IMG/VR virus record: IMGVR_UViG_3300046660_000488
Coordinates: 496,001-560,000 of that record
Length of the DNA stretch: 64,000 nucleotides
Strand: one strand, 5' to 3'
Every line of letters begins with the position of its first letter. Within the stretch, counting starts at the first letter, position 1. The notes below the pieces were generated by a model. The model was not told where the DNA came from. It did not search any database and worked only from the letters and a program-made list of their open reading frames with translations. The translations under genes and the position numbers were made by a program. Shown piece by piece: positions 12,664 through 21,019 of this stretch.

Positions 12664-12748
12664 TGGTGAACTGGGTGGGACTCGAACCCACGACGGCTTT
12701 CGCGTCGGCTTAAAAGGCCGCTTCCTTCGCCACTCGGAACACCAGTCC
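12664..12748 (-). tRNA. tRNA-Lys(TTT), atypical long variable arm
   Basis: 85 nt; loop CT TTT AA; 13-nt variable region; class-II-like D arm. Confidence 0.85.
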
Positions 12749-12757
12749 ATTGGCTGT

Positions 12758-12995
12758 TTCAACCAGAGTGCTTGGCCGGGCTTCCCCCATTCGGTCAGCA
12801 TCGTCTTGTGACGATCTCTACATGAAGAAACGCGCTTCCTCGAAGGGTAAGCTCCGCCCAACATGCACCCAAGCGCTCAGAGGCGTCGGGGTCGAAATAA
12901 CCAGCAGAGGCTGGCTGCACTTCCACCCTAATCAAGTTAAGGCTCAGGTGCGGGATAGGCGCCTCTTTGGAATTTTTCCAAGCGCTCTGGTTGAA
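12758..12995. ncRNA. candidate structured ncRNA between tRNA-Lys genes
   Basis: 18-bp terminal helix 12758-12775/12978-12995 enclosing several hairpins. Confidence 0.5.
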
Positions 12996-12997
12996 GA

Positions 12998-13082
12998 TGG
13001 AGGATCAGGTGGGACTCGAACCCACGGTGGCATACGCAGTTGATTAAGAGTCAACCCCCTTCGCCGCTCGGGACACTGATCC
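12998..13082 (-). tRNA. tRNA-Lys(CTT), atypical long variable arm
   Basis: 85 nt; GTTGA CT CTT AA TCAAC; variable TGCGTATGCCACC; U73. Confidence 0.85.
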
Positions 13083-13098
13083 AAACTCGTTTGTGCAT

Positions 13099-13175
13099 TG
13101 GTGAGCCGGGTGGGACTCGAACCCACGACCACCTGATTAAAAGTCAGGTGCTCTAACCATCTGAGCTACCGGCCC
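13099..13175 (-). tRNA. tRNA-Lys(TTT)
   Basis: Canonical cloverleaf, CCA. Confidence 0.95.
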
Positions 13176-13251
13176 TAAGACTGCCCGACAAGGTGCACTA
13201 CGGACAGTCCCACCTACCAGCCGTCGCAACGTCTGGGGTGTTGTAAAGTGT

Positions 13252-13327
13252 TGGTGAACCTCCTCGGACTTGAACCGAGAACCATTCGCTTAAGAGGCGA
13301 GCGCTCTAACCATTGAGCTAGAGGTCC
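13252..13327 (-). tRNA. tRNA-Lys(CTT)
   Basis: Cloverleaf, loop CT CTT AA, CCA. Confidence 0.93.
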
Positions 13328-13387
13328 ACATAATTCTCAAGTAGCATTGCTCTAAATAGAGCGCAACTTTTTCTTGAGGAAATCTTC

Positions 13388-13762
13388 ATGGGTACTTCGT
13401 TTACCGGCATCAAGACACTATCTGGCATCAAGGTCGCCGATCCGGCGCCCACCAATGTTTCTCCTGTCTTTACCGACCCGACCTACGACCCGGCTGGTGG
13501 TGGGGCCGCTGGTACGCTGGTCGCGGAATTCCTCGAAAACTCGTCGGTGAATTTCCAACTCCATGCGACGAACGCCCAGAGCTTCAGCATCATGGGCAAC
13601 GCCGGAGCGCTTCCCGGTGGCGTGTCGATGTCGTCGGCTGGCCTGTTCACCGGAACGGCTCCCAACGTGACCCAGACCACCAGCTACACCTTCATGGTGC
13701 GTGCGTCTAACGGCGGCCTGAACACCGACAAGCTGATCACCATCGACGTCATCAACGTCTAA
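13388..13762 (+). CDS. putative Ig-like domain virion protein, antisense inside tRNA operon
   Basis: GALPGGVSMSSAGLFTGT..YTFMVRASNG pattern; TAAATA 13353; GAGGA SD. Confidence 0.7.
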   Translation: MGTSFTGIKTLSGIKVADPAPTNVSPVFTDPTYDPAGGGAAGTLVAEFLENSSVNFQLHATNAQSFSIMGNAGALPGGVSMSSAGLFTGTAPNVTQTTSYTFMVRASNGGLNTDKLITIDVINV

Positions 13763-13764
13763 AC

Positions 13765-13840
13765 TGGTTGGCCCTCTCGGGATCGAACCGAGGACGAGTC
13801 TGTTATGAGCAGACGGCTACTACCACTGAGCTAAGGGCCA
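13765..13840 (-). tRNA. tRNA-Ile2(CAT, lysidine type) or Met
   Basis: TGGCCCTTAGCTCAGTGG start resembles ileX-type tRNA; loop CT CAT AA. Confidence 0.75.
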
Positions 13841-13848
13841 GAAGAATT

Positions 13849-13926
13849 TGGTGGGCACGGCGGGGATCGAACCCGCAGCGGTACGCTTTTTAAGAACGCT
13901 GTGTCTACCAATTTCACCACGTGCCC
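13849..13926 (-). tRNA. tRNA-Leu(TAA), short variable region
   Basis: Leu-type D arm; loop CT TAA AA; 78 nt. Confidence 0.85.
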
Positions 13927-13939
13927 GTGGATTTTTGTT

Positions 13940-14026
13940 TGGTGCCCCCGGCCGGACTCGAACCGGCACGTCCTCACGGACACTGGAATTTGAAGCCAGC
14001 GCGTCTACCAATTCCGCCACGAGGGC
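13940..14026 (-). tRNA. tRNA-Leu(CAA)
   Basis: Class II cloverleaf, CCA. Confidence 0.95.
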
Positions 14027-14056
14027 AAGCAAACCGATGAACGGTTGCTTGTAGTT

Positions 14057-14142
14057 TGGTGTGGATGACAGGACTCGAACCTGCACGCCTTGCGGCCACC
14101 GTTGCTGAGACGGCGATGTCTACCAATTTCAGTCACATCCAC
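14057..14142 (-). tRNA. tRNA-Leu(CAG), C37 variant
   Basis: GCCGT CT CAG CA ACGGT; long variable arm; CCA. Confidence 0.88.
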
Positions 14143-14150
14143 GTAGTGCG

Positions 14151-14352
14151 TTTTGAAGAGCGCGGGCATGTATTCCCGACACCGGACTCGAACCGGTACA
14201 AGTGATCTCACCTACATGCTGGGCGGATGGGGTGCTCCCCATCTATCCGGTTTGGCCCCCTCCCGTCAAAGTAGGAGGGGGTTTCACCAGAAGCGTCTAC
14301 CAGTTCCACCAGTCCGGCCGGGTCTTTCTCCCGGCAACTGCTCTCTTCAAAA
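14151..14352 (-). ncRNA. tRNA-Leu-derived expanded RNA without CCA
   Basis: Leu D arm TGGTGGAACTGGTAGACGC and T arm ACCGG TTCGAGT CCGGT retained; anticodon loop replaced by extra hairpins; 10-bp closing helix. Confidence 0.65.
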
Positions 14353-14354
14353 TT

Positions 14355-14432
14355 TGGTGCGCTTGCCCGGACTCGAACCGGGAACACTCTCCGACCTGAA
14401 CGGAGCGACTTTACCAATTTGCCCACAAGCGC
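14355..14432 (-). tRNA. tRNA-Leu(CAG), short variable region
   Basis: CTCCG TT CAG GT CGGAG; 78 nt; CCA. Confidence 0.88.
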
Positions 14433-14447
14433 GTAAACTGTATTTGA

Positions 14448-19510: not shown

Positions 19511-19551
19511 TGGCCTCTCTTCAACCTCCAACCGTCCCTCGATTGTTTCGT

Positions 19552-19626
19552 GGTTCATTAGCTCAGCGGTAGAGCAATCGCTTGATAAGCGATAGGTCGC
19601 TGGTTCGAATCCAGCATGAACTACCA
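19552..19626 (+). tRNA. tRNA-Ile(GAT)
   Basis: ATCGC TT GAT AA GCGAT; CCA. Confidence 0.94.
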
Positions 19627-19657
19627 AACAGTCGAGAGACAACCCCGAGTACTTTGT

Positions 19658-19731
19658 TCTTCTATAGCTCAGCCCGGTAGAGCAATCGCTTGATAAGCGA
19701 TAGGCCGTAGGTTCAAATCCTACTGGAAGAA
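19658..19731 (+). tRNA. tRNA-Ile(GAT), CCA not encoded
   Basis: Cloverleaf; followed by CAA; complementary flanks. Confidence 0.9.
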
Positions 19732-19749
19732 CAAAGTACTTGGGTCCAC

Positions 19750-19824
19750 GGGCCTGTAGTTCAACGGGAGAACGTCTGCATTACAAGCAGAATGTCGGGG
19801 GTTCAACTCCCTCCGGGCCTACCA
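19750..19824 (+). tRNA. tRNA-Val(TAC)
   Basis: TCTGC AT TAC AA GCAGA; CCA. Confidence 0.9.
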
Positions 19825-20029
19825 AAATACTGCTTGACAACGGTTCAACCGAACTTTAGGCAAGCAACCGCGCTCTTCGGGAAGCTCTCTTTGCTTACCG
19901 GACGGATTCCAAAACCTACCATAGGTGCGGAGTCGTGTAAAGGGGCCGGGGTCTTTGACATCGTTGATTTGCGTAACGAATTGGTCGGGCTTTACCAGAG
20001 CCCGGCCGACTTCGGGGACGTGTGTTTGA

Positions 20030-20101
20030 TGAGGGATAGTTCAGCGGTAGAACGCCTGTCTCTGGAACAGGATGTCGTAGGTTCGATCCCTACTCCCTCA
20101 T
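20030..20101 (+). tRNA. tRNA-Gln(CTG), CCA not encoded
   Basis: CCTGT CT CTG GA ACAGG; 16-bp complementary flanks. Confidence 0.9.
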
Positions 20102-20122
20102 CAAACACACGTCCCCATAGGT

Positions 20123-20198
20123 TCGGGGGTAGTTCAGTTGGTAGAACGGCAGTTTTTGGTACTGCATGTCGAAGGTTCGAGTCCTTCTCCCCGATCCA
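20123..20198 (+). tRNA. tRNA-Gln(TTG)
   Basis: GCAGT TT TTG GT ACTGC; CCA. Confidence 0.93.
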
Positions 20199-20220
20199 AA
20201 CACTCAGTATTCATCCTTGT

Positions 20221-20306
20221 TGGGGAATGGTGTAATGGTAACATCCCGGCCTTTGACTCCGGAGACCGAGAAGGATTTGTAGGTTCGAGCCCTACTTCCC
20301 CAGCCA
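20221..20306 (+). tRNA. tRNA-Gln(TTG), long variable arm
   Basis: 86 nt; loop CT TTG AC; variable AGACCGAGAAGGATTT. Confidence 0.85.
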
Positions 20307-20335
20307 GCATGAATATTGAAGACAATGTACTTTGA

Positions 20336-20412
20336 CGCGGAGTGGAGCAGTCAGGTAGCTCGTTTGGCTCATAACCAAAAGGTCGCGGGATCGAAGCCCG
20401 CCTCCGCATCCA
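20336..20412 (+). tRNA. initiator-like tRNA-Met(CAT), variant
   Basis: C1xA72 mismatch; anticodon stem TTTGG/CCAAA; T loop ATCGAAG. Confidence 0.85.
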
Positions 20413-20422
20413 AGTACATTGA

Positions 20423-20620
20423 GGCCGCGTAACAAGAGAGTGAAGCAGTGATGCCCCGTCATCTGTACCTGACGGGGAGGCCAGAAACAGACCGTGCATA
20501 CGCCCCACGGTCTCTAAATATGGAACACGGACCCACTGGGGCCGTGCGGGAGCCAGCACGACCCGCCGTGGTCTAAGTCCGTAAGGGGCAGAAAGCGGCA
20601 CACCCGGTACTGGCGGGTAA
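20423..20620 (+). ncRNA. candidate structured ncRNA
   Basis: Nested helices GCCGC/GCGGC, CCCCGTCA/TGACGGGG, AGACCGTG/CACGGTCT, CGTGC/GCACG; no credible ORF. Confidence 0.45.
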
Positions 20621-20651
20621 CCTATTTGGTCGAATGACCATCACCTTTTTT

Positions 20652-20729
20652 TGCGGGGTGGAGCAGTCCGGTAGCTCGTCAGGCTCATAACCTGAAGGTC
20701 GTGGGTTCAAATCCCACCCCTCGCACCCA
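20652..20729 (+). tRNA. initiator-type tRNA-Met(CAT)
   Basis: GGAGCAG..GGTAGCTCG TCAGG CTCATAA CCTGA (alphaproteobacterial fMet pattern). Confidence 0.88.
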
Positions 20730-20747
20730 ATTGTCCATGTGCTTCGT

Positions 20748-20824
20748 CTAGGCGTAGCGCAGTCTGGTAGCGCGCCTGCTTTGGGAGCAGGATGTCGCAG
20801 GTTCGAATCCTGCCGCCTAGACCA
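20748..20824 (+). tRNA. tRNA-Pro(TGG)
   Basis: CCTGC TT TGG GA GCAGG; C1:G72, A73. Confidence 0.95.
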
Positions 20825-20844
20825 AGCACATGGACTTTCACCTA

Positions 20845-20930
20845 CGGCAGTCGGTGAGGATGTAACAGGTTCGATCCCTGACCACAGGCTCTTGCGAGCG
20901 TGTGAGTAAGCCCATCCAAACCGACTACTG
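20845..20930 (+). ncRNA. T-loop-containing, permuted-tRNA-like RNA
   Basis: Closing helices AGTCGGT/ACCGACT and GGATG/CATCC; T arm CAGG TTCGATC CCTG followed by a closed acceptor-like hairpin. Confidence 0.5.
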
Positions 20931-20931
20931 A

Positions 20932-21019
20932 TCCTCACGACCCAGCTTGGTGACGGGCGCCGACTGTTAATCGGATGACATGGAAATGTGGCAAGGTTCG
21001 AAACCTTGGTGAGGAACCA
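20932..21019 (+). tRNA. tRNA-Asn(GTT), long variable arm
   Basis: 88 nt; loop CT GTT AA; variable stem ACAT-GGAA-ATGT. Confidence 0.85.

Follow-up and report, generated by a model that had tools for sequence, protein, structure and literature searches.

Why does a huge soil phage encode transfer RNAs (tRNAs) whose shape does not fit their anticodon? Long variable arms of bacterial tRNAs are, in the textbook account, confined to Leu, Ser, Tyr and Sec. IMG/VR virus record IMGVR_UViG_3300046660_000488, a 578,292-bp soil phage genome with direct terminal repeats, encodes Lys, Gln and Asn tRNAs with long variable regions and Leu tRNAs without a long arm. All lie in bases 496001–560000, a stretch of 64,000 nucleotides called the window below. 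The best explanation, with a probability of about 0.45, is that these genes encode genuine, conserved cognate decoders on the wrong structural class, which would serve as nuclease-resistant back-ups.

The odd genes and their partners are listed one per line, with window coordinates unless marked otherwise.

12664–12748, minus strand: long-variable-arm tRNALys(UUU), 85 nt (ARAGORN; Rfam RF00005, 45.7 bits; member of alignment A1, described below).
12998–13082, minus strand: long-variable-arm tRNALys(CUU), 85 nt, same scaffold as 12664, U73, encoded CCA (ARAGORN; Rfam, 48.0 bits; alignment A1).
13099–13175, minus strand: canonical-shaped tRNALys(UUU), 77 nt, partner of 12664 (ARAGORN; Rfam, 75.8 bits).
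13252–13327, minus strand: canonical-shaped tRNALys(CUU), 76 nt, partner of 12998 (ARAGORN; Rfam, 65.5 bits).
13849–13926, minus strand: short-variable-loop tRNALeu(UAA), 78 nt, Leu-type D arm GUGAAAUUGGUAGACAC, A73 (ARAGORN; Rfam, 56.3 bits).
14057–14142, minus strand: ordinary long-arm tRNALeu(CAG), 86 nt, partner of 14355 (ARAGORN; Rfam, 31.8 bits).
14355–14432, minus strand: short-variable-loop tRNALeu(CAG), 78 nt, D arm GGGCAAAUUGGUAAAGUC, A73 (ARAGORN; Rfam, 52.1 bits).
20123–20198, plus strand: canonical-shaped tRNAGln(UUG), 76 nt, partner of 20221 (ARAGORN; Rfam, 63.1 bits).
20221–20306, plus strand: long-variable-region tRNAGln(UUG), 86 nt, 16-nt variable region (ARAGORN; Rfam, 50.4 bits; 89.5% identical homologue in the related phage G001).
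20932–21019, plus strand: long-arm tRNAAsn(GUU)-like gene, 88 nt, 16-nt variable arm with a 4-bp stem (ARAGORN only).
21090–21165, plus strand: canonical-shaped tRNAAsn(GUU), 76 nt, G73 (ARAGORN; Rfam, 70.8 bits).
Genome 42360–42445, outside the window: long-arm tRNAThr(UGU), 86 nt (ARAGORN).
Genome 104252–104338, outside the window: long-arm tRNACys(GCA), 87 nt (ARAGORN).

The initial annotation had named six odd genes (two Lys, Gln, Asn and two Leu), and ARAGORN recovered all six with their coordinates and strands. Rfam recovered five of them, each above the RF00005 gathering threshold; the Asn variant had no Rfam match. A canonical copy of 76–77 nt with the same anticodon does lie near each long variant (13099, 13252, 20123 and 21090), and Leu(UAA) 13849 and Leu(CAG) 14355 do lack the long arm. 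The list of six was incomplete, as the same genome carries the long-arm Thr(UGU) and Cys(GCA) genes. Variable regions are 13, 13, 16 and 16 nt in the long Lys(UUU), Lys(CUU), Gln and Asn genes, all within the class II architecture of at least 10 nt (PMC7609411). The variable loop is 6–7 nt in the two short Leu genes, and the remaining four Leu genes of the array are 86–87 nt in length. Leu(UAA) 13849 is the sole UAA-anticodon Leu gene of the genome, and homologues of the short Leu(CAG) are present in other phage contigs. When single tRNAs were folded by minimum free energy, z-scores were −0.7 to −2.7 and the folds were not cloverleaves, an uninformative result that is usual for tRNAs.

The Asn variant is the weakest call. 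It has no Rfam match even at E≤1 and no homologue in IMG/VR, so it is an orphan that ARAGORN alone calls. It has G8, A73 where G73 is expected, U1:A72 and a D arm unlike the scaffold described next.

Are these bodies borrowed from other tRNAs? Each tRNA of the genome was split into its arms for comparison. Lys(UUU), Lys(CUU), Thr(UGU) and Cys(GCA) share a common body with U8-G9, a class-II-like D arm and an enlarged variable region. The D arm is of the type YCCGAGYGGCGAAGGR in Lys, GCUCAGUGGCGACAGC in Thr and ACCGAGUGGUCGAAGGU in Cys; in the Lys(UUU) gene it reads UUCCGAGUGGCGAAGGAA, followed by variable region CGCGAAAGCCGUC, A73 and an encoded CCA. The D loop is AGYGGCGA (AGUGGUCGA in the Cys gene). 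G9 occurs in many members, including all four of this genome, and C9 or U9 elsewhere. The four bases before the T stem are CACC in Lys(CUU) and Thr, CGUC in Lys(UUU) and UCAC in Cys, and this tail is CAYC in most members; the T arm is GUGGG-UUCGAGU-CCCAC, with UUCGAAU in Cys. Acceptor stems and discriminators differ among the four genes and fit the anticodon, with G1-C2-C3 in Thr and U73 in Cys. The Lys pair, Thr(UGU) and Cys(GCA) are built on a phage-specific scaffold, and none of them stems from a Ser, Leu or Tyr gene of the phage.

The other odd genes have different anatomies. Long Gln 20221 has an ordinary tRNAGln body (U1:A72, G2:C71, G3:C70, G10, G73) with D arm GGUGUAAUGGUAACAU and about 11 nt extra in the variable loop. 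C31 is mismatched with U39, the variable region forms no stable helix, and the related phage G002 has this body with a variable loop of 5 nt. In the short Leu genes only the arm is lost; the D arms are still of Leu type, with A73. The description of these genes as body-swapped is therefore inaccurate, or half right at most: it fits the class-II-like D arm and G9 of the Lys variants, which nonetheless belong to the phage scaffold, and not the Gln insertion or the Leu arm losses; the long Asn gene stands apart.

Is the scaffold maintained? Alignment A1 comprises 25 long-arm tRNALys sequences from about 20 phages. Pairing holds in 94.5% of the cells of its four cloverleaf stems, and both sides have changed in 16 of the 21 pairs. 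None of 500 shuffles reached the observed values, and slid registers gave 36–54% pairing. The 7-bp acceptor and 5-bp T stems are 99–100% paired across the 25 sequences. The variable region follows a plan of one unpaired base, a stem usually of 3 bp (range 2–6), usually a tetraloop, and four unpaired bases. A covarying variable stem of 2–6 bp is found in 21 of 25 sequences, with pairs that differ among phages yet stay complementary (GC/GC, UGC/GCA, GUC/GAC, AGC/GCU, CCC/GGG, ACAAGC/GCUUGU). In the window the stems are 2 bp with tetraloops GAAA in Lys(UUU) and GUAU in Lys(CUU). An unstructured A/C-rich loop of 11–12 nt (for example UAUACAAACAYC) replaces the stem in three Lys members and most long Thr genes. 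This pattern of paired changes indicates that the structure of the long tRNALys is under selection.

How far does the scaffold extend? Two related huge phages, G001 (415 kb, IMGVR_UViG_3300050120_000230) and G002 (517 kb), were reached by a protein search with SrmL, an enzyme described below. All three related phages have both Lys anticodons in the long form. Because the Lys pair is conserved in the two relatives and in many other phages, with covarying stems, the long-arm pattern is not chance. G001 additionally encodes long-arm Thr(CGU), Gln(UUG), Ile(UAU) and a CUA suppressor. An anticodon-blind scaffold pattern (GGCGARRGR, a gap, then GGGTTCGAGTCCC) matched 29 IMG/VR stretches. Most of the long-arm tRNAs in these stretches are Lys, followed by Asn and Cys. 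About 20 viral contigs carry the Lys scaffold. The Thr-type D arm GCUCAGYGGCGACAGC occurs in 88 viral stretches, 86 of which hold long tRNAs that make up 60 distinct sequences. With the anticodon unconstrained, 69 of 75 distinct tRNAs bearing this arm are Thr, mostly UGU, and 72 of 75 have a long variable region.

Cultured phages carry the same forms. BLAST matches to the long tRNALys were found in Caulobacter phiCbK-like phages (CcrRogue, Karma, Magneto, Swift, phiCbK, CcrBL10 and others), in Xanthomonas phage XacN1 and in Ruegeria phage V10, where the gene was checked. Ruegeria phage DSS3P8 and Brevundimonas jumbo phages were identified by BLAST match only, the latter with gene lengths unchecked. 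Mesorhizobium phage Cp1R7A-A1 has a long tRNALys and an 88-nt tRNA-Asn. The long genes are labeled 'tRNA-Lys' and occasionally 'tRNA-Ser' in these records, or are left unannotated. In prokaryotes the Lys scaffold was found in 2 of 185,579 species genomes, both times in dense tRNA arrays (a Methyloligellaceae metagenome-assembled genome and a 4-kb contig), and the scaffold is essentially phage-only.

Identity elements were counted in a pool of 2109 distinct phage tRNAs from fetched loci; the samples had been gathered by sequence patterns. Among sampled non-class-II tRNAs, the GGCGA D loop occurs in 95 of 194 long and 17 of 1528 short sequences. Short-arm Leu genes account for 67 of 219 sampled phage tRNALeu. 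A scan with the Gln body returned mostly ordinary short-loop tRNAGln of unrelated phages and two long ones, so the long Gln is a rare, lineage-restricted variant. Phage tRNAs for Ile(UAU), Met, Pro, His and Trp can have long variable regions as well. Long-arm forms make up 17 of 27 distinct tRNAIle(UAU) in sampled loci (for example L023:3846 (−), L049:1187 (−) and L057:8785 (+)); they do not have the GGCGA D loop and form a separate expanded-arm family.

Which amino acid would such tRNAs carry? E. coli LysRS recognizes U35-U36 of the anticodon together with A73, and E. coli GlnRS recognizes U1:A72, G2:C71, G3:C70, G10 and G73. In the pool, long Lys genes have UUU or CUU anticodons throughout and discriminator A in 14, U in 18 and C in 2 of 34; short Lys genes have A in 90 of 100. 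Long Cys genes have U73 in 12 of 12, long Asn genes have G73 and U1:A72 each in 15 of 17, long Thr genes have G1:C72 in 67 of 68, and short Leu genes have A73 in 64 of 67. The whole E. coli GlnRS set is present in long Gln 20221. Long Asn 20932, with its A73, lacks the cognate G73, and for this gene alone a cognate identity cannot be argued. Leucine identity consists of A73 and a Leu-type D loop for the E. coli and Aquifex aeolicus enzymes (PMC2377443); both short Leu genes of the window have the two elements, and the Leu D loop is absent from the long Lys, Gln and Asn genes.

The same elements bear on an idea of the initial annotation, that anticodon-blind LeuRS or SerRS charges the long tRNAs and causes codon reassignment. 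SerRS uses discriminator G73 (PMC7609411). G73 occurs in 0 of 34 long Lys and 0 of 12 long Cys genes and is absent from 67 of 68 long Thr genes; in the window it is found among the long genes only in Gln, as a Gln element, with A73, U73 and A73 in Lys(UUU), Lys(CUU) and Asn. The tRNASer of this phage have variable regions of 20–21 nt, stems of 4–6 bp and at most one unpaired 3′ base, whereas the long Lys stems are mostly 3 bp (2 bp in the window) and leave four 3′ bases unpaired. Conserved Lys, Asn, Gln and Cys residues in motifs of the phage AspRS (FKQLLM, DKPDLR, KYGAPPHGG, QxPQ, CFRDE) are encoded by standard codons and align with a solved AspRS, so the usual meaning of these codons is retained. 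Long or short, the tRNAs of the pool have identity elements that match their anticodon, which makes mischarging and reassignment unlikely. The odd tRNAs are best read as genuine phage genes that decode normal codons and are most likely charged with the amino acid of their anticodon.

Such charging is feasible, as anticodon, discriminator and acceptor stem are what the synthetases in question read. Cognate charging of the long Lys forms would proceed via class I LysRS, which is used by Alphaproteobacteria and encoded by this phage:

Genome 45473–47050, minus strand: class I LysRS (PF01921, 331 bits; NF001968, 612 bits).

Class I synthetases approach the tRNA opposite the variable region, and most class II synthetases face it. 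This approach side would account for the predominance of Alphaproteobacteria among the hosts of the cultured carriers. Among the bacterial controls, Caulobacter alone had class I LysRS; the enzyme also turned up in 4 of 4 alphaproteobacterial genomes to which the scan had led and in 93 of 121 genomes sampled from that class.

What could the shape be for? The long-arm and arm-less copies would escape host tRNA-targeting enzymes that read tRNA shape together with local sequence (D loop, positions 39–41, variable arm). Once host tRNAs and the canonical-shaped phage copies are destroyed, the reshaped copies would sustain phage translation. In the scaffold, the D loop is replaced and bulk is added next to the cleavage site; arm-less tRNALeu could escape toxins that read the long arm. 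Existence, conservation and covariation of the genes are seen in the sequences, while their expression, cognate charging and cleavage resistance are inferred.

PrrC and colicin E5, named in the initial annotation as anticodon nucleases, fit less well than AriB-like enzymes, which the sequences point to as the better candidate. AriB, the Toprim nuclease effector of PARIS, cuts E. coli tRNALys(UUU), tRNAThr(UGU), tRNAAsn(GUU) and, weakly, tRNAThr(CGU) between positions 40 and 41 (PMC11464382, PMC12409363). It reads U36-A-A-U39-C40|A41 and D-loop U16-U17, and UAAUCA is the recognition and cleavage motif in E. coli (PMC12409363). These targets nearly equal the scaffold specificities Lys, Thr(UGU) and Asn, and this overlap makes the nuclease-resistant back-up, an idea already raised in the initial annotation, the best available, still provisional, reading. 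By post hoc calculation, the probability is 0.006 that Lys, Thr and Asn are all among four amino acids drawn from the 17 that are class-I-shaped. C40-A41 is found in 11 of 95 long and 58 of 157 short Lys and Thr(UGU) genes (p = 9e-6), and the full UAAUCA in 6 of 96 long and 46 of 195 short Lys(UUU), Thr(UGU) and Asn genes (p = 1.6e-4); both p values are optimistic, as the sequences are related. In the window, positions 36–41 read UAAUCA in canonical Lys(UUU) 13099 and Asn(GUU) 21090, and UAAGCC in long Lys(UUU) 12664. Toxins that read the variable arm are also known. Sensitivity of a tRNA to MenT3 is set by variable-arm length and orientation (PMC11541572), and AbiEii is said to likely prefer class II tRNAs (bioRxiv 10.64898/2026.01.19.700257). 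Variable-arm logic of these two nucleotidyltransferase toxins is the logic invoked here for arm loss in Leu and arm gain in Lys and Thr, although they are toxins and not tRNAs.

Several observations weigh against the back-up reading. Long Lys(CUU) of the window keeps UAAUCA, and C40-A41 is as frequent in long as in short Asn genes. AriB does not act on Gln(UUG) (PMC12409363), and Cys is not among the reported targets, yet both have enlarged variable regions here. No single nuclease accounts for all cases, given the enlarged variable regions seen among Ile(UAU), Met, Pro, His and Trp tRNAs. A back-up beside a canonical copy is not universal, since the Lys genes in the 24-tRNA locus of phiCbK-like phages are apparently all long. 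XacN1 infects Xanthomonas, a gammaproteobacterium, which weakens the argument from class I LysRS. AriB specificity is known from one E. coli system. Sampled frequencies are biased by the pattern-based sampling, and Fisher tests are inflated by phylogenetic relatedness.

A wider version holds that large phages keep a dedicated 'armoured' tRNA chassis, with a class-II-like D arm and an enlarged variable region, for the decoders hit by Toprim-type (PARIS/AriB-like) nucleases (Lys, Thr(UGU) and Asn), and arm-less tRNALeu that escape long-arm-reading toxins. The switch of structural class would then be a general, unrecognised counter-defence, and the restriction of long arms to Leu, Ser and Tyr no hard constraint of bacterial translation. 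This version is tentative and, on sequence comparison, rather doubtful.

Could the shapes instead mean nothing? The main rival is that arm change is a (nearly) neutral, tolerated trait of a tRNA family spreading among phage arrays, in which class I LysRS, LeuRS and other synthetases ignore the variable region and the genes serve codon supply only. Arm gain or loss is indeed widespread, over Ile, Met, Pro, His, Trp and Gln, and nearly a third of the sampled phage tRNALeu are short-armed. The long forms are apparently the only Lys genes in the 24-tRNA locus of phiCbK-like phages, and the cultured carriers are mostly on Alphaproteobacteria, where class I LysRS is usual. However, very different phages, from 130 kb to 608 kb, share the D loop and the four-base variable tail, and the GGCGA motif is tightly coupled to the long variable region. 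Anticodon-blind scans also restrict the scaffold to Lys, Thr, Asn and Cys, and huge phages hold both shapes for the same anticodon side by side. These features together suggest selection for the shape itself and make neutrality unlikely, if still the most serious competitor.

A second alternative treats the reshaped tRNAs as dedicated substrates of phage synthetases (class I LysRS, a truncated ThrRS, CysRS, and GluRS and AspRS acting on tRNAGln and tRNAAsn), in a translation branch insulated from the host. The encoded LysRS, ThrRS, CysRS, GluRS and AspRS provide a conceivable phage enzyme for each long-arm specificity, and the phage AspRS is closest to a solved non-discriminating Asp/Asn enzyme. 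As an obligatory partner, the phage class I LysRS was rejected, being encoded in just 1 of 29 other phage records, about 15 of which have long-arm Lys; it is absent from the phiCbK-like records tested (CcrRogue, Karma, CcrBL10). Long-arm Thr genes lie on many small contigs. No GatB that would convert Asp-tRNAAsn or Glu-tRNAGln was found in the genome, which speaks against a phage transamidation pathway for long Asn and Gln, and the PF00133 search of the genome gave no LeuRS match. Such private pairs are improbable.

An improbable role, too, is that of decoys that soak up defence nucleases or toxins, or act outside translation, and decode little. Non-productive binding of viral tRNAs was raised as a possibility by the AriB authors (PMC12409363). 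The Asn variant of the window seems sub-optimal as a tRNA (G8, A73, no Rfam match), and the anticodon stem of the Gln variant is weakened. The conserved families, in contrast, retain an intact acceptor stem, T arm and anticodon loop along with their identity elements, and CCA is often encoded too, as expected of charged tRNAs used by the ribosome.

Mischarging by SerRS, LeuRS or TyrRS through the long arm, with Ser, Leu or Tyr ambiguously decoding or reassigning Lys, Gln and Asn codons, is very improbable given the identity elements, stems, standard AspRS codons and canonical same-anticodon copies described above, even though SerRS is among the phage-encoded synthetases, A73 of Lys(UUU) 12664 and Asn 20932 is the Leu/Tyr discriminator, Asn(GUU) shares G34-U35 with tRNATyr, and Leu-charged class II tRNAs with foreign anticodons are known in nematodes (PMC3333845).

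How do these genes compare with known systems? Phage T5 tRNALys(UUU), tRNAThr(UGU) and tRNAAsn(GUU) neutralise PARIS and differ from the sensitive tRNA at positions 39 and 41 and D-loop position 16 (PMC11464382, PMC12409363). They are phage isoacceptors of the dominant scaffold specificities, with the same proposed role of supporting translation after host tRNA cutting. Here, unlike in T5, the whole D arm and variable region are rebuilt in class-II-like form. Mycobacteriophage tRNAs evade tRNA-targeting host defences via anticodon-loop mutations (PMC10264068), and phage tRNAs evade retron effectors (PMC11555353). Both are likewise cases of tRNA genes as counter-defence, but there it is loop sequence or tRNA supply that acts and not a variable arm gained or lost. 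Allo-tRNAs and (8/4) tRNASer/tRNAHis occur in alphaproteobacterial phage tRNA clusters (Mukai et al., PMC5389517). Allo-tRNAs, some of them from such clusters, have long variable arms and non-Ser anticodons in common with the genes described here. They are serine acceptors with 8/4 or 9/3 geometry, tRNASec-like D arms and G73 or U73, whereas the tRNAs described here are 7/5 with cognate identity elements. Nematode nev-tRNAs (PMC3333845) are also class II tRNAs with anticodons of class I amino acids, but they are eukaryotic, charged with Leu and potentially recoding, where the identity elements here point to cognate charging. No description of class-II-shaped Lys, Thr or Asn tRNAs or of arm-less tRNALeu in phages was found in the full-text literature, of which coverage was incomplete.

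The genome encodes 69 tRNA genes (ARAGORN), 40 of them in two divergent arrays of the window:

11963–15330, minus strand: array of 16 tRNA genes, Trp ×2, Lys ×4, Met, Leu ×6 and Arg ×3 (ARAGORN).
19552–24336, plus strand: array of 24 tRNA genes, divergent from the minus-strand array (ARAGORN; syntenic array in G001).

No RNA sequencing run containing the phage was found; the sole run with the full phage is a rhizosphere metagenome, probably the source sample. In the plus-strand array, tRNAMet(CAU) at 20336–20412 (+) has an initiator-like C1xA72 mismatch, U73 and an unusual T loop, AUCGAAG. Between the arrays lies a gene for a collagen-triple-helix-repeat protein (17037–17975 (+); Pfam PF01391, 80 bits), with neighbouring open reading frames (ORFs) that have no family match. 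A ResIII/DEAD-box helicase ORF of 498 aa is at 33408–34904 (+). Directly 3′ of the plus-strand array is the SrmL ORF (24414–25463 (+); NCBIfam NF051887, 'PheS-related mystery ligase SrmL', 438 bits), which has a class II core of the PheRS alpha type; no literature on SrmL was found. SrmL was rejected as a general partner of the long tRNAs: it is present in this phage and its two close relatives, but none of the 27 further phage records of the pattern scan, about half of them with long-arm Lys, has it.

More than 10 aminoacyl-tRNA synthetases are encoded by the phage, including AspRS, GluRS, SerRS, CysRS and IleRS. ThrRS and ValRS, both outside the window, are synthetases without editing domains: ThrRS (435 aa, genome 193418–194725 (+)) lacks the N-terminal domains and matches only profile positions 169–554 of 565, and ValRS (469 aa, genome 174872–176425 (+)) lacks the CP1 stretch. 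ArgRS-like and MetRS-like ORFs were judged by eye and have no family assignment. A HisZ-like fragment of the HisRS catalytic core (171 aa, genome 105645–106160 (+)) lies outside the window between two tRNAHis genes. Two neighbouring tRNA(CUA) amber-suppressor genes are at genome 109999–110155 (−), also outside the window. TAG recoding was rejected: coding density is normal under table 11, TAG is the stop of 139 of 575 ORFs of at least 200 aa, and nothing points to recoding across the genome. In G001, Rfam tRNA matches of 107 and 110 nt (373113–373219 and 373269–373378), uncalled by ARAGORN, may contain introns or be expanded in another way; the long-arm CUA suppressor (L025:486), 88 nt, adjoins them.

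Long-armed Lys, Thr, Asn, Cys and Gln tRNAs and arm-less tRNALeu are recurrent, conserved and almost exclusively viral, and have gone unremarked in the GenBank records of cultured phiCbK-like, XacN1, Ruegeria and Mesorhizobium phages. Caulobacter and phiCbK offer a tractable system in which the question is directly testable. If the shape protects from tRNA-cutting defences, it would be a new kind of counter-defence and would help explain the duplicate tRNA genes of big phages. If it does not, these genes still show how much of the tRNA body several synthetases ignore, which would be useful for orthogonal tRNA engineering.

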